In this document: positions 2,893-55,995 of the stretch, piece after piece
How positions within the stretch are numbered: the stretch's first letter is position 1
Layout of the letters: the number at the start of each line of letters is the position of its first letter
Assembly (NCBI GenBank): GCA_040285825.1
Contig: JAUPSS010000002.1
Coordinates: forward strand, 3,534,001-3,598,000
DNA from: Eukaryota sp. TZLM1-RC
Lineage: Eukaryota; Protista; Metamonada: BaSk clade
Reading direction: 5' to 3'
Length of the DNA stretch: 64,000 nucleotides
Notes under the pieces: generated by a model
What the model was told of the DNA's origin: nothing
The model's database searches: none
The model's input: the letters and a program-made list of their open reading frames with translations, nothing else
Translations under genes and position numbers: made by a program

Positions 2893-4186
2893 TTATTTAT
2901 TTACAAATTCAAAGATTGTGGGTTTAATTTCTTTAAAATGTGGAAAGAAATGATCAATTTTTCTTAAGAGAATCACAAAACATTGAAATTGGAGGGCAAA
3001 ATGTTGTCGAGAGACTTCAATCAAAAAAGGTCTTCTGAAGGCTTTTAAAAAATCTACAATGAATTCATCGTCAAATTCATCATCGGCAGGTGACCCCACC
3101 ACATTCTTAAGTTCCAGAAGGTTAACATCAGAGCATGGGGACTGGTTAGTTGGGTTGAGGTCGACATCAGAGAAAAGGAACTGAACAAAAGCAAAACATC
3201 GATCTTGTATTGATATGGGAAACAATGTCTTGATAACATACAGCAGATACCGAAGCACCATGTCCTCTGGGACCCTCTCTTCTTCCTTGTGGATGTCTAT
3301 GTTAGGTGACACTTGCTGACATTCCCTTACATTGTTAAACACATCGAGATTGATCAATTCATCAGCAGAGGGTCTCTTCTTCCTATCCAAGGAAAGCATC
3401 CTCTCAACAATGGTAGCTAACTCTATAGGAACGTTTGGATTGATGTCCAGAACACTTAGATGCTCCCCTTTCAGAACTTTCTCTTTTACTTCAACAGTTC
3501 GCGTTCCTGGAAAAGGATGCTCCAAGGTCATTAGCTCATAGTATACCACTCCCAAAGAGTACACATCCGCACTATAATCATACCTTGAACCAAGAAATAT
3601 CTCGGGACTGCTAAAATGAGCAAGTTGTAATGTCGTACCTATATAAAGGCGTCCCAACCATTGTTTGATGTGCATCGCTTGTCAACTCCTTCGCCAGTCC
3701 CAAATCCGAAATATACACATGTATAGGATGCATTGAACTTATCAGAATATTACTACTGGATACATCTCGATGTAGATACCCATTTTGATGAAGAAAAGCC
3801 ACTGCGGATGTAACTTGTTTTAGGATATTAATAATAATGTCATTATCAATAAACTTTTCTTGTTTTTTTATAAAGTCATATAGAGAACCCTTATTGCAGA
3901 ATGGCATTAGAATATCAATAGAATCTGTAAGAACATTAGCTCCCTTGATTGGGATAATATGATTGTGGTTTAAAGATGAGAGCAAATCTACTTCTCTTTT
4001 GCATCGATATCTATCATCCTCTTTCATGTGTGTTGTGAGCATGTTCTTCAGGGCGTAATATGTGCCAGTACGACGACAAGAGAGTAGGTAGACTACACTA
4101 AATGCACCACGACCTAAGACGACAGGTTTTCCAGAGTCACTATGTGTTACGAATTCGTATTCCTTGAGATTGATCTCATGAGACAT
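2893..4186 (-). CDS. NEK-like Ser/Thr protein kinase; one 28-nt intron (3611-3638)
   Basis: LGRGAFSVV, ALK, HRDVSSSN, DLG; removing GTACGA...CTCATTTTAG joins GTPLYSSPE and links the two track ORFs. Confidence 0.85.
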
Positions 4187-8917: not shown

Positions 8918-11515
8918 GAAGAGGTGATGTATACTGTGATTGGATATACCGAGAAATTAAGTAAAATTTTTGAAGACAAATGCTTTGACAACAAATGGTC
9001 CAAGGCTTTGTCAGCTTTAAGTCCCGGAGTTAAAGCACCGAACAATGAAAATACAATAGATAAACTGAAAATACTTCATCCTTATGAAGACCCTATAATG
9101 GATCAAAATTTTTACGGCACATACTGGGAAAATTATCCATTGATGCCATCAGAAGTTTTTTCGGTTATCAAAAAGAGACCTCGTGGTAAGTCTGCCGGAC
9201 TTTCTGGTATTACTATTGATCATGTAAAAGCCGCGATTATTTCTTCAGAAGATTGCATTGGTTTATTGACCAAATTTTTCAACCAAATATTATCTGGTCA
9301 ACGCAAATACCCAGAAGAATTAAGAAGTTCTCGTTTGACTGCACTTGTCAAAAATTCAAAAATGGATGTTCGTCCTATTGCAGTCTCTGAGAGCTTACAC
9401 AATATTTTTTCTGCGTGTTGCTTGAGCAGGTTCAATGAGAAAGCTAAAAAGATTTTATTACCCTTTCAATATGGTATAAATACTACAGATGGAGTCTCTT
9501 CAGCGATTTTTGCTACTGATGTCTTATTTCGTCAAAATGAATCCAATGTTTGCATGTCATTGGATTTTAGTAATGCTTTCAATTCACTAAGTCGTCGCAG
9601 TATCCATGGTGCTCTATTGCAATATATGCCTGAATAAATGCCGTATTTTCAATCAACATATAGCACATATTCTAATTTACATTTTGGTAATTGCATTTTG
9701 AGTTCATCAAGTGGTGTAAAGCAAGGAGATCCGTTAGGACCTCTTTTGTTTTGTTTGGCCATTCATCCTATTTTATGGCAAATTCAGGAGATGCTTCCTT
9801 CGCTGAAAATGATTGCATATATGGATGATGTTGTGCTTATTGGTGATTTAAATAGTGTGAAACAAGCAACTGTATGTTTAAAGAATTATTTACCAATATT
9901 GGTCTCCGACTTAATTTACTTAAATGTGTTTTGTTATCGAATTCTCCAGTTTCCACAATAATTGATGATATTGAAATTCAAGCCAAATTATATTCAATTG
10001 ATGCTATTCGTCATTTGGGTTTGTTTTTAGGAAATAATGATGAAATTACCAAAAAATTGTTTGAAAAGTTGAACTCAATTTCTGACAAAATTGACCGAAT
10101 GATGAATTTAGATATAAAAAAACACATCAAATTTACCATTATAAGACTGTGTTTTAGTTCCAATTTTAATCATATATTTCGATCTACAAATCCTCTCGTC
10201 ACTAGACCTTTGGCTCAAAAGTTTAATGAGTTACGTGCAAAAGTTCTGTCTCAATTACTGGGATGTAAAATGTTTCAAATTCCAGATCATGCTTACCTTA
10301 GTCCACATTATGGTGGTTTAGGGTGGACGAAGGCTTCTGTTCTTACCTCGTGTGCTTTTGTTGGTGGATGCAGAAATGCAATCTTTGAGTTTTCCGAAAG
10401 ATTTGCAGATTGGGAAGATTTATTGATGACAACGCAAAGTTCCACTGTTTTTGCATTAAATGAAGAAATTTCAAGAATTGATGTAGAAAAATGGGGTCGA
10501 TGTTTTCCCCAATCATTCAATGGCAATATTCCAGAAAAAAATGTTTTAAATTTGAAGTACACTCTTCGAACATTACAGAAACGATTGACTGGAATGTATG
10601 ATAAAGATCTTTATAATAATATATGCAGCTCGGCTGTGTTAAATCAAGATCTTCACTCATTGTTATTGGAAAAGGGTGTTTGTGAAAATAAGTCGTCAGA
10701 TTCTTCACTGTTTGTAACTATTGTACCACGAAGATTTGGATTGTGTGCCACTAATGAAGCATTTGTAACAAAAATGAGATTATATTTGAATATCCCCATT
10801 AATCAATTATTATCAAAAGAAAAATGTATTTGTTCGAATTCACCTCAACTCACTTTGCGCCATGCTCTAAATTGTTCTACATTGATAACTTATCGTTCTT
10901 CATTACATAATGCTGTTAGAGACACTGTTTTCAATATGGCACAAACTGCAAGAATATCGTGTATCAAAGAGCCCCTGCTGAAGGAAACACTTTCTCTGAA
11001 TAATTTTGGTTCTGATGATAGAGGTGATGTATACTGTGATTGGATTGATAATTCTGAAGCTATTGTTGACTTTGTCTCATGTAATGTTGCAAACGATACT
11101 TTGGTTCACAGAAGAAAACTTAATCCTGTGGCTGCTCTGGATTTTAAAGCAAAAGAAAAACATAGAAAATATGATAAAGAAATTGAAGATGCAAATGTCG
11201 ATAGAAATACACAGCTGGTTTTTATTGCTTTCCCATTTTCGATAAATGGAAGATTATCAGTTGAAGCAGAAACTTTTTTGGATGACTTCCAAAAAATGGT
11301 GAAAGAAAAAACAATGAAAAGATTTGATATTTTTTTATGGCGTTCACGGATTCAATTTGCCATTATTAATAGATTACCGCGGTTTTTCAATCGAATTAGA
11401 GAAGCTTTAGCTAGACAGCAAGCAAATCAAGATTTTGTAGAGGAAATCTTGGTTTAATGATAGTCGTCCCATTAGTTATGATTTAATTTAATCAAGTGTG
11501 CAAATTCAATAAATA
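8918..11515 (+). mobile_element. CRE-like RLE non-LTR retrotransposon family A, 5'-truncated (stop at 9635, frameshift near 9880)
   Basis: RT motifs RPIAV, DFSNAFN, GVKQGDPLGP, YMDD; CxC..HxxNC knuckle; RGD..D..K..KY..PF endonuclease; 3'UTR ends ...CAAATTCAATAAAT. Confidence 0.9.
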
Positions 11516-13304: not shown

Positions 13305-14493
13305 AATTTATTGAATTTGCACACTTGATTAAATTAAATCATAACTAATGGGACGACTATCATTAAACCAAGATTTCCTCTACAAAATCTTGATTTGCTT
13401 GCTGTCTAGCTAAAGCTTCTCTAATTCGATTGAAAAACCGCGGTAATCTATTAATAATGGCAAATTGAATCCGTGAACGCCATAAAAAAATATCAAATCT
13501 TTTCATTGTTTTTTCTTTCACCATTTTTTGGAAGTCATCCAAAAAAGTTTCTGCTTCAACTGATAATCTTCCATTTATCGAAAATGGGAAAGCAATAAAA
13601 ACCAGCTGTGTATTTCTATCGATATTTGCATCTTCAATTTCTTTATCATATTTTCTATGTTTTTCTTTTGCTTTAAAATCCAGAGCAGCCACAGGATTAA
13701 GTTTTCTTCTGTGAACCAAAGTATCGTTTGCAACATTACATGAGACAAAGTCAACAATAGCTTCAGAATTATCAATCCAATCACAGTATACATCACCTCT
13801 ATCATCAGAACCAAAATTATTCAGAGAAAGTGTTTCTTTCAGCAGGGGCTCTTTGATACAAGATATCCTTGCAGTTTGTGCCATATTGAAAACAGTGTCT
13901 CTAACAGCATCATGTAATGAAGAACGATAAGTTATCAATTTAGAGCAATTTAGAGCATGGCGCAAAGTGAGTTGAGGTGAATTCGAACAAATACATTTTT
14001 CTTTTGATAATAATTGGTTAATGGGGATGTTCAAATATAATCTCATTTTTGTTACAAATGCTTCATTAGTAGCACACAATCCAAATCTTCGTGGTACAAT
14101 GGTTACAAAAAGTGAAGAATCTGACACCTTGTTTTCACAAACACCCTTTTCCAATAACAATGAGTGAAGATCTTGATTTAAAACAGCCGAGCTGCAAATA
14201 TTATTATAAAGATCTTTTTCATACATTCCAGTCAATCTTTTCTGTAATGTTCGAAGAGTATACTTCAAATTTAAAACATTTTTTTCTGGAATATTGCCAT
14301 TGAATGATTGGGGAAAACATCGACCCCATTTTTCTACATCAATTCTTGAAATTTCTTCATTTAATGCAAAAACAGTGGAACTTTGCGTTGTCATCAATAA
14401 ATCTTCCCAATCTGCAATTCTTTCCGAGAACTCAAAGATTGCATTTCTGCATCCACCAACAAAAGCACACGAGGTAAGAATAGAAGCCTTCGT
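13305..14493 (-). mobile_element. Family A CRE-like element, 5'-truncated
   Basis: ORF 13363-14397 nearly identical to the C-terminal part of ORF 9874-11457. Confidence 0.9.
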
Positions 14494-16451: not shown

Positions 16452-18020
16452 TTACAATACATCTTCTTCATTTCCAATCTTAAGTTCTTCCTCGACCAAA
16501 TGTTTCCTTCTCCAAATCTCTTCCATTCTATTTCTATTTCGTTCAAGTTCAGAACTTCTCAATCTGGATATCAAAGACGAGCTTAGTTGTTCTTCGTTTT
16601 GTGTTGATATAGTTTCAGCATTATCCAATTGAATTTCCCTAAATTCTTTGGAGTTTTGTACAATTGACATTAATGCATGACGGTCGTTCAATAGTTGAAG
16701 TAAATCAGGGTTTACCTCTTCATTGTCCTCATCAATACCTGCATCAATCACTTTCTCAATCAATTCTGATAATTGATTGCTGAAATCGACACAAGCTTCC
16801 CTTAATTTACCAAACCAACTCAAGATTAGATCAATAGCCTTTCTTTTAAGTCCATCATAATGTTGATCAAAAGAATCCAAGATCGAAATATTTTGTTCGG
16901 CCAACTCCAACTCCAACTCCACTAATTCATCATTCAAAGTATCGTTCTTTTCAGAAAACGAACTAACCAAAGCGGTCAAATCTTCCATTTCTAATGGTAA
17001 ATCTTCTACATCTTTCATTTTAGCCAAAACAATCCTCTTTTCTTCTTCAAAAGCTGCGACCAGCTGTAGCGCTTCCTCCTCGTTACTGTGAGAGACAACC
17101 GACAGTGATTTTTGCAACTCCTTATATTCATGATCTTTTGCTTCTTGTATATTAATCATGTCTTTTCTGAAGCCACTTACTAATAAATTAATATTCTGTT
17201 CAAAGTCAATCATCAACTCCTCCACTCCATCAATTAAAGCAATTTTTTTGATATCTGGGTCTTCGGTAGTCAATGTCGAAAACAACCCTCTTACTGCCAA
17301 ACAATTGCTCTTTTCGTCAATCTGACGCTCCCTTTCCTCCTTTTCTTCCTGCTCTCTGACATCAGACTCTACTTTTTCCAAGTCCATCAGCTCCTTCACT
17401 TCTGTTTCAAACTTGTCAATAGCGGCCCTCACTTCAGACTCATGACACAAACGGTAGTCAAGGTACCTAAGCTTTTGACAATGAGCGAGTACACAAGCTC
17501 TATACGACACGTCATCAGCCAGGGGGTTTCCGGTTAACATCAAAATACGCAGACAAGGAAACTTTCGCAAAAAGCGAGACACTTCAGAGACTGGGGTGGC
17601 AATTTTGTTCTTCCCTACGTTGAGCAGACGAAGCTTTGTTAAATGTTCAATGTTGGAGATGGAGGTGAGGTTGTTTCGGAAGAGCCGAAGTTCAGTAATG
17701 TTTACAAGGTTTTCCAAGCCAGATATGGTGTCTATCTGGTTGAATGAGAGGTCAAGAGACTCAAGCAGGATGAGATGTGATATGTTTTCAATGGTCTTGA
17801 TTTTGTTGTTGTCAAGTTTTAAGTGACGGACCTTGGTGTAAGGTTGGAGATTGGCTATGTTCAGAATGTCTGAATGTTAGCTCGTGGAAGAAGAAATACC
17901 TTTGAAACTGAGGGTTATTGTTTGGATATCAAAGATAGAAGCTTCAGGTTTCAATGTACAGGATGAAGAGATAAGCTCTTCATTGATGACTCCTGGTGGC
18001 GGTGGATTAAGGTTTGTCAT
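16452..18020 (-). CDS. DRC3: Dynein regulatory complex subunit 3 (LRRC48); one 30-nt intron (17870-17899)
   Basis: ATG 18020 gives MTNLNPPPPGVINEELI, then LSFK|DILNI..LKLDNNKI..LDLSFNQI LRRs, LRRcap (YRACV..LRYLDYR) and coiled coil. Intron GTATTT...GCTAACATTCAG carries an in-frame TAA. Confidence 0.85.
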
Positions 18021-28819: not shown

Positions 28820-29502
28820 CTAAACCAGCTTTAATCTTTTCTTCAAATAAGATCGCATATAATACATCTGAAGTGCAGCAGAACCAAACATAACAAAAAC
28901 ACAAAACAGGTTCATCCACTGGACTCTACTCCTGGCAGATTCGGTAAACTCACGGAGTTCTGTTTCCCTTGTAGAAAGGTAACGTTGAACCTCCACAACT
29001 TCAGAGATTCCATCAAGTAATTGTCGCGTAGCAAGGGAAACTGTATCGAGTTGCTCCTTCTTGGCAACGGCTTCATAATCCATGGCGGCATGTCCTACAT
29101 CTACATTGACAGAGAATCGTAGCTTAGTGACTGTCCTGAACCAAGTGGAGGCATCAGCAATGAAGCACATCTAAGATGAGAGCTGTGAAGGGACAAACAA
29201 ACTTCATAGATACCACCCAGAGTAGCCGTAAAAACCACCTGTCCTTCATTCTTGACATGAGAACTACTGATTGTACGACCAGCTGGATCGAGAACTACAA
29301 CATTTGCACGAAGATTGTTATCATGCTTTTGAGAAGCCATCGGGGCAGTGTCTTCAGCAGTGTAGCGTAAACGAACTAAAGTATGTGGAGGAAGTTCTTC
29401 AGCAAAGCATTTTCGACTCCCCTCATAAAGAGTAAAAGAAAGAGCATTCACATGCAAAAAGAAGAATGTCAGAACAAGAAGCAGGGTGTATAATGTATGC
29501 AT
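28820..29502 (-). CDS. p24/TMED (emp24/gp25L) cargo receptor; one 32-nt intron (29171-29202)
   Basis: Signal peptide, GOLD domain (KCFAEEL..GIYE|MCF), coiled coil, TM and KKRLKLV tail; intron GTTTGT...CTCATCTTAG joins the two ORFs. Confidence 0.85.
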
Positions 29503-32124: not shown

Positions 32125-35100
32125 CAAATACTTTTTCTGCGTGTTGCTTAAGCAGGTTCAATGAGAAAGCAAAAATGATTTTATTACCCTTGTAATATGG
32201 AATTAATACCACTGATGGAGTCTCTTCAGCGATATTTGTTACTGATGTATTATTTCGTCAAAATGAATCCAATGTTTGTACCTCATTGGATTTTTTTAGG
32301 ATAAATTTATTTTCAACGCTAACAAAACATTAAACAAAAAACTAGAACTCAATATCCTCAATACACGCATCAACATCATCAAATCTTTTAAGCGCACGAT
32401 TTTCATACTCTATTCCTAATTGTAACAGTGCTTTGGTCAACATTTCTGGAATTGCTTTAAGAATACTGAAAACAATTCTATTGTGCCAGAAATTGAAGTT
32501 CAATTCTTTTCCTGCTCTTTCTTTTATTAAACTTCTGAAACCTTCAAGAAATTTAATGCCAGATATTCCAATGTTACCAAAAAGAGAAACAGCAAATGGA
32601 ACCAACTGATACTTAACATGCTCAACACGTCCTAGCTGAGATAAGGGTTCATTGTACTTTTTGATTTTGCTCTTTTCAGCAAAGCAAAGTGGAGTTTCAT
32701 CTCTTTTAGCAAAGTCAATTGCTGAGTCTTTACAAACATCAACAGTGACAACATCAACAACTTTAATAACACCATCAGACGCAGGGGTAATTAAATCAGC
32801 ACGGCGTTTCCCAAAAGTATTTTCATTTTCATTTTCAGATGACAACCTTCGCACAAGTGGTTCAACAAAAGCTTCAATGTGATGGCTTTTGCACATAGCG
32901 TATAGTTGGTCTCTAACAGCATCGTGAACAACTGAGCGATATGTAATATTAAATTTGCAATTAAATAAATGATTCAGATTAATGAGATGACCACAACGAC
33001 AAATCAAATCATTTGGCACACTACATGGCCACAGGAAACACCTCATCCTGAAGGCAGTTGTCCATTGATGATCATTTAATAATAGACCATATACATTTGG
33101 AATCTGGGAAATAAGACAACTTGAGCTACTATCCTTGAGGTCAATTAAAAAGTTTGCAAAAACGGGATTCTTTTCTTTAGCCAAGCTAAGACGAACAGTG
33201 AAATCCAAGTTTTCAAAAACTTTTAATATCTTTTTCTGCAATTTAGCATATGCAAATTTCAAGGAAATCAAACTCCTGGGTGGAATTTCTTGAATATCAG
33301 CAGGAAAGCATTTGGACCATATGTGAGGAGAGATGCATTCAATTTCACTCTGCAAGGACACTAAATAGTCACTAACACAACATTCTATCAAATGCTGGTT
33401 TTCAGGAAAACGTTTCAAAAATTCAAAAACGAAATTTTTTTCCTCCACCGATGAATGCGGCTTTACACAAATAATTTGATTTGTGAAAATCCAGGCCTCC
33501 CAATTCTGTGCTACAAAAAAATATGACTACGTAAAAAGAAGAATCAATATCGAGCAAATTAGCCAAAAATTTTGTTCTTAATTCATTAAAAATTCTGCAA
33601 AATTCGAGAGAAATAGATGGTGATGTTGATCGTAAAATATGAGTAAATTTCCCTGAATAACAAATTCTGAGGAAGAAAAATTTAAGATGTTTTTCAATAT
33701 TTAAATCTGAAAGAACCATCAATTCTTCTTCAAAATTATCCAAAAGAGAGGAAAGTTGATTTCGAATTTCATCAAAGTTGCCTAAATAACAACCTAAAAA
33801 AACGAAATCCTGATTCAAAATAATTGATAAAAGGAACACTTTGATCATCAATAATGAAATCAGCAGGCTCTCTACCAATCAATAAACATTTGGAAATATT
33901 TAGAGAAAGACCAATTTCATAATAGCGCTGTTGAACAATTTCAGCAATTGTTCTCAATGAATCAATTGGACCAATTATTGATATGTCATCCATATAAGCA
34001 GTTATATGAACATCTGGAAATTCTTGTTTTAATTCACACATTAAAGGATGGATAGCAAGACAGAAAAAGAAAGGACCTAATGGATCACCTTGTTTGACAC
34101 CAGATGATGATATTAGATTGAATTCCTCATAAACAAGAGTCGATTGCGAGCCATAAAAATTGTAAAAAAACGACTCAGCTTCTGGAAAATGAGTTTGAAG
34201 CAAGGGCAAGATGGACGACCTCTTCACTGCATTGAAAGCGTTTTTAAAATCTAAATTGAAAATATAATTCGAAGTATTGGAATTAAAAAAGACATCAGAA
34301 GAGAGTGCTGCAGAAGATGCACCATCAACTGTTTTAATTCCAAATTGGAAAGGACTAAAAAAATCTTTAGCTTTTTTACCAATCCTGCCAAACACAGCTG
34401 AAGCAAGAATACGAGACAAAGATTCACCAATTGCAATTGGCCTTATTTTTGATTCATTCTTTTTTAAAGCAATTAAGCGTGAACTTGTCATTTCAGATGG
34501 AAGCTTGATTTTTAATGTTAAAATTTTGTTGAAAAAGAAAACCAAATCATCAATACATTCAGAACATTGGTTTATCGTGGATTTTAACATGTCAAAAGTG
34601 ATCATTGGATTTTAGTAATGCCTTCAATTCACTCAGTCGTCAAAGTATCCATGGTGCTTTATTGCAATATATGCCTGGATCAATGTCGTATTTTCAATCA
34701 ACATATAGCACATATTCTAATTTACATTTTGGTGATAGCATTTTGAGTTCATCAAGTGGTGTAAAGCAAGGAGATCCGTTAGAACCTCTTTTGTTTTGTT
34801 TGGCCATTCATCCTATTTTATTGCAAATTTAAGAGATGTTTCCTTCGCTAAAAATGATTGCATATATGGATGATGTTGTGCTTATTGGTGATTTAAATAT
34901 TGTGAAACAAGCAACTGTATGTTTTAAAGAATTATTTACCAAAATTGGTCTCCCACTTAATTTACTTAAATGTATTTTGTTTTCGAATTCTCCAGTTTCC
35001 ACAATAGTTGATGGTATTGAAATTCAAGCCAAATTATATTCAATTGATGCTATTCGTCATTTGGGTTCGTTTTTAGGAAATAATGATGAAATTACCAACA

Positions 35101-50572: not shown

Positions 50573-51236
50573 ATGGCTAGAGATCGTGTTTACTTTGACG
50601 TTACTATCGGTGGTCGTCCTGCTGGACGTGTCGTCTTTGAACTTTACAATGATATCGTTCCCAAAACTGCTGAAAACTTCCGTGCCCTCTGTACCGGTGA
50701 AAAGGGAACCACCCGCAACAAGATTCCTCTCCACTATAAGGGATCTAAATTCCATAGAATCATCCCCGATTTCATGGTTTGTACAGCGTTTTTCTAACGT
50801 TAGGCTCAAGGTAAGTATTTACTCTTTAAACCCTAACCTCATGCGGAGACTTCACTGCTGGCAACGGTACCGGTGGCATGAGTATCTATGGGGAGTGTTT
50901 CAATGACGAAAACTTCACTGTTAAGCACACCAAACCAGGGTATGTCCTTTAATCCTTTTCTAACCATATTCTCCTCTCCATGGCAAACCGTGGCCGTAAG
51001 TATGTTTTGCATTTTAATTCATCATAGCACCAACGGCTCTCAATTCTTCGTGACATTCGTCCCATGTCCGTATGTGACATTATATTATTTATTTTAGTTG
51101 GTTAGACAACAAGCACACCGTCTTTGGAGAAGTTGTTGAAGGAATGGATGTTGTACAAGCTATGGAAAGAGTTCCCACTGGTCCCAACGATGTTCCAAAG
51201 GCCGAAGTCAAGATTGTTGATTGTGGACAACTCTAA
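50573..51236 (+). CDS. Cyclophilin (PPIase), 172 aa, 6 exons: 50573-50776, 50804-50810, 50843-50939, 50970-50999, 51028-51069, 51098-51236
   Basis: The spliced product restores [54 protein letters not shown]; exons total 519 nt. Confidence 0.9.
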
Positions 51237-54456: not shown

Positions 54457-55995
54457 AGATCTTCACTCATTGTTTTTGGAAAAGGGTGTTGGTGAAAACA
54501 AGTCATCAGATTCTTCACTTTTTGTAACCATTGTACCACGAAGATTTGGATTGTGTGCCACTAATGAAGCATTTGTAACAAAAATGAGATTATATTTGAA
54601 TATCCCCATTAATCAATTATTATAAAAAGAAAAATGTATTTGTTCGAATTCACCTCAACTCACTTTGCGCCATGCTCTGAATTGCTCTAAATTGATAACT
54701 TATCGTTCTTCATTACATGATGCTGTTAGAGACACTGTTTTCAATATGGCACAAACTGCAAGAATATCGTGTATCAAAGAGCCCCTGCAGAAGGAAACAC
54801 TTTCTCTGAATAATTTTGGTTCTGATTATAGAGGTGATGTATACTGTGATTGGATTGACAATTCTGAAGCTATTGTTGACTTTGTCTCATGTAATGCTGC
54901 AAATGATACTTTGGTTCACAGAAGAAAACTTAATCCTGTGGCTGCTCTGGATTTTAAAGCAAAAGAGAAACATAGAAAATATGACATATTGAAGAGGCTA
55001 ATGTCGATAGAAATACACAGCTGGTTTTTGTTGCTTTCCCATTTTTGATAAATGGAAAATTATCAGATGAAGCAGAAACTTTTTTGAATGACTTCCAAAA
55101 AATGGTGCAAGAAAAAACAATGAAAAGATTTGATATTTTTTTATGGCGTTCACGGATTCACTTTGCCATTATTAATAGATTACCACGGTTTTTCAATTGA
55201 ATAAGAGAAGCTTTAGCTAGACAGCAAGCAAATCAAGATTTTGTAGAGGAAATCTTGGTTCAATGATAGTCGTCCCATTAGTTATGAGTTAATTTAATTA
55301 AGTGTGCAAATTCAATAAATATTATTTTTAATGTACAGTTTCAAAAAAACACTGGGTTTAACCTTAAAATTAAAATTCCAAATCAGTTTTTCATTACTGT
55401 TAAAGACACTCTTTTTAATGTGGGAAGAATGCAAGAATCTCGTGTATCAAACAGCCTCTGCTGAAAGAAACATTGTTATGAAACAAGGTTGGTTCTGATG
55501 ACAGAGGTGATATTTACTGTGATTGGATTGATAACTCTGAAGCTGTTGTTGACTTTGTATCCTGTATTGTTGCAAATGACACTATGGTTCAAAGAAAACT
55601 TAATCTTGTAGGTGCTCTTGAATTTAAGGCCAAAGAAGAACATAGAAAATATGACAAAGATATCGAAAAAGCTAATGCTGATAGAAATAGACCAGTTATT
55701 TATATTGCTTTCCCATTTTCTATAAACGTAGGATTATCAGTAGAAGCAGGAACTTTGTTGAATGATTTCAAAAAATGGTTCAGGAAAAAACAATGAAAAT
55801 ATTTGATACTTTTTTGTGGCGATCGAAAATTGAATTTGCCATAATTAATAGATTGCCTCGGTTTTTCTATTGAATTAGAAAAGCTTTAGCGAGACAGTAA
55901 GTAGGTCAAGATTATGTAGAGGGAATCTTGGTTCAATGATTTTCGTCCCATTATTTTGAGCTTGTTCTGTTTACTGTGGAAGTTTGATAAATAGA
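54457..55995 (+). mobile_element. Two tandem family A 3' copies (54457-55322 recent; 55390-55995 diverged)
   Basis: Match to 10647-11515. Confidence 0.85.

Follow-up and report, generated by a model that had tools for sequence, protein, structure and literature searches.

Two putative GT-AT mini-introns in a cyclophilin gene of Skoliomonas litria TZLM1-RC

Structure of the Cyclophilin Gene

The DNA analyzed here, referred to as the window, is a 64,000-nucleotide stretch of contig JAUPSS010000002.1 (positions 3,534,001 to 3,598,000) from TZLM1-RC, the type isolate of Skoliomonas litria (PMC11603281). Skoliomonas is placed in the BaSk clade, sister to Fornicata (PMC11316075). Direct reading and frame tracking located a cyclophilin A-type gene at positions 50573-51236 of the forward strand, corresponding to the deposited gene P9112_003828 (JAUPSS010000002.1:3584573-3585236), which spans 664 nt and encodes 172 aa in six exons. 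Exon 1 (50573-50776) contributes 68 codons and ends in ...IPDFM, and it is followed by intron 1 (50777-50803; 27 nt, GTTTGT...CTAACGTTAG, GT-AG) and by a 7-nt microexon, exon 2 (50804-50810), which supplies A, Q and the first base of a G codon. Two introns ending in AT flank exon 3 (50843-50939, last residues ...KHTKP), namely intron 2 (50811-50842; 32 nt, GTAAGT...CTAACCTCAT, GT-AT, full sequence GTAAGTATTTACTCTTTAAACCCTAACCTCAT) and intron 3 (50940-50969; 30 nt, GTATGT...CTAACCATAT, GT-AT, full sequence GTATGTCCTTTAATCCTTTTCTAACCATAT). Exon 4 (50970-50999; 30 nt), which encodes LLSMANRGR plus split codons, is separated by intron 4 (51000-51027; 28 nt, GTATGT...TTCATCATAG, GT-AG) from exon 5 (51028-51069), which was matched to the deposited protein by a codon walk. 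Intron 5 (51070-51097; 28 nt, GTATGT...TTTATTTTAG, GT-AG) then precedes exon 6 (51098-51236), with a TAA stop at 51234-51236. The five introns amount to 145 nt, as given by the deposited span minus the CDS. Skipping of the microexon would shift the reading frame, and thus the flanking 27-nt and 32-nt introns have to be spliced out in succession. This structure upholds the central statement of an initial annotation of this DNA, which had described two GT-AT introns in an otherwise intact cyclophilin, with two corrections: intron 4 has its GTATGT donor at 51000, and exon 2 is a microexon of only 7 nt.

Both AT-ending introns match the U2-type donor consensus GTRWGT, both have a YTRAY branch motif near the 3' end, and in both a perfect CTAAC occupies positions -10 to -6, exactly 5 nt before the end, as had been described (50833-50837 in intron 2 and 50960-50964 in intron 3). 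The presumed branch adenosines would be 50836, the seventh nucleotide from the end of intron 2, and 50963 in intron 3. The accompanying remark that the motif appears "as in the AG introns" proved too broad, since of the gene's three AG introns just one has a perfect CTAAC, and introns 4 and 5 carry TTCAT and TTTAT in its place. No U12-type donor (RTATCCTT) is present, in agreement with the first reading, and the donors are GTAAGTAT and GTATGTCC.

Neither AT-ending intron contains a terminal AG, and no frame-compatible AG restores the conserved residues, while retention of either intron brings an in-frame TAA into the message. Excision of intron 2 at its AT yields AQ-G-GDFT. The next AG downstream, at 50847-50848, is in frame, and its use would remove the GG of QGGDF, exactly as anticipated in the initial annotation. 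Intron 2 could equally be drawn one base over (TA..TG), with the same resulting mRNA, and the boundary of intron 3 is unambiguous. For intron 3, the absence of any AG before SMANRG was also correctly noted, as the first AG past the intron lies at 50999-51000 and overlaps the donor of intron 4. With no usable AG after intron 3, an AG-only spliceosome must skip the 30-nt exon 4. Both AG-only alternatives stay in frame, and thus the reading frame alone is insufficient to exclude AG-only splicing.

Agreement with the Deposited Protein and Known Cyclophilins

The exon peptides were aligned on a cyclophilin scaffold, and the alignment was then searched against a protein collection. The search retrieved "hypothetical protein P9112_003828 [Eukaryota sp. 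TZLM1-RC]" (P0161), 172 aa in length, and a codon walk by coordinates over the six exons reproduced this protein residue for residue. Default AUGUSTUS is not known to emit GT-AT introns, which suggests that the AT ends of the deposited model were placed deliberately, by a curator or a hint. The gene models of S. litria were generated through RNA-seq mapping (HISAT2, GeneMark-ET, AUGUSTUS, PASA) and later manual curation (PMC11316075). Since homology may have guided the curation of the deposited model, the match to this protein and the collinearity with cyclophilins are not fully independent.

The exon peptides tile cyclophilin scaffolds collinearly, with 3, 1, 1 and 1 residues missing at the successive junctions. 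Exon 1 matches residues 1-68 of the PDB cyclophilin 4hy7_A and the full codons of exon 3 match residues 72-102, and the three-residue gap between them is exactly filled by the microexon and the split codon. Over its whole length, P9112_003828 (1-172) aligns to 4hy7_A (1-171) with an E value of 2e-78 and without a gap at either AT-intron junction. In addition, exons 1 and 6 match Pfam PF00160 (Pro_isomerase), exon 3 matches PDB chains, and the cyclophilin core motifs that were sought (FHRIIPxFMxQGGDF, SMAN, GSQFF and WLDxKH) are all present, with MANRGR as a variant of MANAGP.

The 90% cluster of P9112_003828 has a single member on one NCBI contig, and among the best hits of the protein-collection search S. 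litria was represented by no other close cyclophilin of the A type, which makes a dead copy accompanied by a live twin unlikely. In the same collection, no Logan or transcript contig encoding P9112_003828 was found, and the read-through ORF of exon 1 is absent from its records. A further ORF of the window, at 33775-34605, also gave no record.

Comparison with Skoliomonas sp. GEM-RC1

The nearest sequenced relative is Skoliomonas sp. GEM-RC1, whose cyclophilin ortholog (P0175, locus L002:3001-3584) shows 80% identity. At all five S. litria intron sites, the GEM-RC1 gene is uninterrupted coding DNA, reading ...ttt atg gcc cag ggt gga gat ttc... (FMAQGGDFT) at the site of intron 2 and ...cct gga ctt ctt tca atg gcc aac aga ggt cgc gat... 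at the site of intron 3. The GEM-RC1 gene contains two introns at other positions (L002 3056-3088 and 3136-3164), both of them GT-AG.

Divergence between the two genes amounts to a pN of 0.15 and a pS of 0.80, both being proportions, with synonymous sites saturated. All nine residues of exon 4 are identical to those of GEM-RC1 in the presence of seven synonymous differences, and both full codons of the microexon differ, again synonymously. Judged from this comparison, the microexon and exon 4 are under strong purifying selection. No cyclophilin ortholog of TZLM3-RCL, the deepest-branching Skoliomonas isolate (PMC11603281), was found among the hits of the protein-collection search.

As a separate observation, the five introns of the S. 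litria cyclophilin and the two of its GEM-RC1 ortholog have no position in common, which suggests that introns have been gained or lost very rapidly between the two most closely related of the sequenced Skoliomonas genomes.

Introns of the Window and Their Signals

All annotated introns of the window were located by way of the gene calls deposited around four anchor proteins. This census reproduced the earlier count of eight introns, two of which end in AT, both in the cyclophilin gene (three AG and two AT). The remaining three are all on the reverse strand and belong to a kinase gene (3611-3638, 3' end ...CTCATTTTAG), an LRR gene (17870-17899, 3' end ...CTAACATTCAG) and an EMP24 gene (29171-29202, 3' end ...CTCATCTTAG). 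Introns are clustered in this DNA, with five in the 664-nt cyclophilin gene, one in each of three other genes, and about 20 neighbouring annotated genes consisting of a single exon (regions 40573-61236 and 8600-30600).

A set of 11 Skoliomonas introns, comprising the eight of the window, one just outside it and the two of GEM-RC1, has lengths of 27-33 nt. An A within a YTNAY pentamer is found at -7 in nine of these introns and at -8 in the other two. The best signals of the whole set are those of the two AT-ending introns, which combine GTAAGT or GTATGT donors with a perfect CTAAC. The initial annotation had proposed that a strong branch point offsets a non-G terminal base, and both AT-ending introns fit this proposal. 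Among the nine S. litria introns, a perfect CTAAC is present in both AT-ending introns vs two of seven AG-ending ones (Fisher p ~0.17), an association that with nine introns is not significant and is suggestive only.

The composite pattern GT[AT]NGT...CTAAC+5 occurs seven times on both strands of the window, of which three occurrences fall in the cyclophilin gene and a further three in copies of one repeat, and this count argues that the intron signals of the cyclophilin gene are not due to chance. The GT..CTAAC..AT matches at 10910, 13874 and 54720 were rejected as introns. They belong to the repeat just mentioned, which is found at 10910-10946 (reverse strand), 13874-13910 (forward strand) and 54720-54756 (reverse strand) and carries a mini-intron look-alike, GTTTGTGCCATATTGAAAACAGTGTCTCTAACAGCAT, and at 32913-32922 there is CTAACAGCAT. 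The repeat runs antisense to an overlapping long ORF at the two copies that were compared with the ORF list, and the resemblance of GTTTGTGCCATATTGAAAACAGTGTCTCTAACAGCAT to a GT..CTAAC+5..AT mini-intron is probably fortuitous.

Introns 2 and 3 have in common the pattern CTTTAAWCC...CTAACC, which was picked post hoc and is found nowhere else in the window. A derivation of the two introns as copies of one family was considered and discarded, as the similarity of their interiors is no outlier among 55 intron pairs. A pyrimidine element, GTCC(C/T)TT / CTTTAAWCC, recurs just past the donor in several mini-introns, namely cyclophilin introns 2 (50824-50832) and 3 (50947-50955), intron A of GEM-RC1 (L002:3060-3066) and the EMP24 intron (29171-29202, reverse strand), and this element might represent either an extension of the donor or another branch-like element.

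Nature of the AT-Ending Introns

From the coding sequence at the junctions, the deposited protein, the GEM-RC1 gene and the purifying selection on the microexon and exon 4, we infer that introns 2 and 3 are probably genuine spliceosomal mini-introns, which would be removed from the RNA exactly at their AT ends, 50842 and 50969. A terminal AG is among the most invariant signals of eukaryotic genes, and this near-universality, together with the open frame of both alternatives, favours a reading in which intron 2 extends to the AG at 50847-50848 and 50940-51027 is removed as one GT-AG intron, leaving a crippled protein of ~160 aa or a young pseudogene. We consider this reading quite improbable. 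It would sacrifice the invariant GG of QGGDF and ten active-site residues. In GEM-RC1 both segments are the same, even though synonymous sites are saturated. Moreover, the 519 coding nucleotides show no other lesion, the deposited curated protein includes both threatened segments, and the best hits include no further close S. litria cyclophilin of the A type. The position of the alternative AG also argues against it. In Trichomonas vaginalis, which has branch point and 3' splice site fused into one element, the spacing is essential, and a shift of 2 or 7 nt abolishes splicing (PMC6679479). If the distance from branch point to cleavage is similarly fixed in S. litria, an AG 13 nt past the branch A would be an unlikely acceptor for intron 2. 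Even less credit can be given to an assembly or consensus error that conceals a true G at 50842 and 50969: the locus is represented by one assembly only, but its coverage is 41x Nanopore plus 206x Illumina (PMC11316075), and two independent G-to-T errors falling exactly on the last intron base within one gene are very unlikely.

The same boundaries could also be produced by a minor (U12-type) or hybrid U2/U12-like spliceosome, which we regard as unlikely. Spliceosomes of this kind are known to accept GT-AT termini and to place the 3' site according to how far it lies from the branch point. GT-AT is documented as a rare, splicing-competent U12-type subtype (PMC1557818), and the snRNAs of Giardia have hybrid U2/U12 characteristics (PMC6679479). 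In both AT-ending introns, moreover, the CTTTAAWCC element, a post hoc pattern, lies 12-18 nt from the 3' end and loosely and only in part resembles the U12 branch site TCCTTAAC, which is expected 10-20 nt from the end. Against this stand the donors, which are GTAAGTAT and GTATGTCC rather than RTATCCTT, and the same architecture in the AG introns of the cyclophilin gene. In addition, T. vaginalis, for which "ubiquitous GT/AG" has been reported, is without U12-type introns (PMC12316389). An Rfam scan of the 64-kb window returned no match and thus no minor snRNA, which says little about the whole genome. The initial annotation had attributed the excision to a major spliceosome; the AT ends are indirectly supported by the deposited protein, the uninterrupted GEM-RC1 ortholog and the purifying selection, but the "major" part of that claim was not established.

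Proposed Mechanism and Comparison with Known Systems

For genuine AT-ending mini-introns, a mechanism may be proposed that follows the pattern of Giardia, Spironucleus and Trichomonas: branch point and 3' splice site would form one fused signal, and the second catalytic step would cut at a fixed distance past the branch adenosine (A at -7, corresponding to CTAAC plus 5 nt). The A at -2 would be kept and the last base relaxed, with U accepted besides G, and such a U might be tolerated given an optimal donor (GTAAGT or GTATGT) and a perfect CTAAC. We think it likely that the S. litria spliceosome routinely accepts AU in a sizeable share of its ~30-nt introns, perhaps one in five to one in ten, using a 7-nt ruler and reading only the A at -2. 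Such routine acceptance would mean that the AG rule has been relaxed throughout the lineage, in a spliceosome of either U2-type or hybrid character.

The introns described here resemble those of Giardia, Spironucleus and Trichomonas in their short and uniform length, their GTATGT-like donors and a CTAAC-type motif that keeps a constant, very small distance to the end (PMC6679479, PMC11316075). In contrast to the introns of those organisms, which end in AG, two of the five introns of this gene, and two of the eight in 64 kb, end in AT, and the branch spacing is CTAAC+5 rather than ACTAAC+6. A precedent among the relatives is Giardia, in which a single 30-nt GT-AT intron of the branch-motif class ("Type A") has RNA-seq support and is rarely spliced (PMC10711314). 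A flexible terminal dinucleotide (GT-AT, AT-AT, AT-AA) and selection of the 3' site by its distance from a strong branch site are also properties of U12-type introns (PMC1557818), which differ from the present ones in the RTATCCTT donor and in a branch A that lies about 10-15 nt, not 7 nt, from the end. The combination of a U2-type donor with an AT 3' terminus has a further parallel in animals, in which GT-AT is also very rare as a U2-type form, as in DGCR2, where it is conserved between human and mouse (PMC1557818). However, those animal introns are single cases among hundreds of thousands, and they are long and have polypyrimidine tracts. According to a preprint, tunicates (Oikopleura, Fritillaria) offer another likeness, in that a sizeable share of their introns departs from GT-AG, but the dinucleotides are different ones and the change is tied to divergent U2AF and snRNA modification (bioRxiv 10.1101/2025.08.15.670264).

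A full-text literature search returned no paper on frequent GT-AT introns in any protist, and the genome paper of S. litria is silent on intron ends and AT termini (PMC11316075). The cyclophilin locus contributes two well-supported AT introns, a clean intron-free comparator and a census of the window. In current structures of the spliceosome, the last G of the intron pairs with the first. If numerous constitutive introns in genes that are essential and highly expressed do end in AU, S. litria would provide a natural system for studying whether 3' splice sites are chosen by distance or by base identity, and its AU-ending introns would reveal the limits to which the interaction of the first and last nucleotides can be relaxed. 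Gene finders restricted to GT-AG would mis-model such genes, and in the case of cyclophilin the GG and ten active-site residues would be lost; mis-modelled AT introns of this kind would affect proteome-based inference for Skoliomonas and its uncurated sister genomes.

Additional Features of the Cyclophilin Genes

Cyclophilin A proteins normally read SMANAGPN. Both Skoliomonas cyclophilins have SMANRGR(N/D) at the corresponding position (50980-50999 in the window and L002:3385-3404 in GEM-RC1), and this variant puts two arginines in the active-site and cyclosporin-binding loop. The neighbourhood of the cyclophilin gene differs between GEM-RC1 and S. litria, and the gene upstream of cyclophilin in GEM-RC1 (L002:1-1687) has a faint Pfam match to Cas12f1-like_TNB, which is of the TnpB/Fanzor type.
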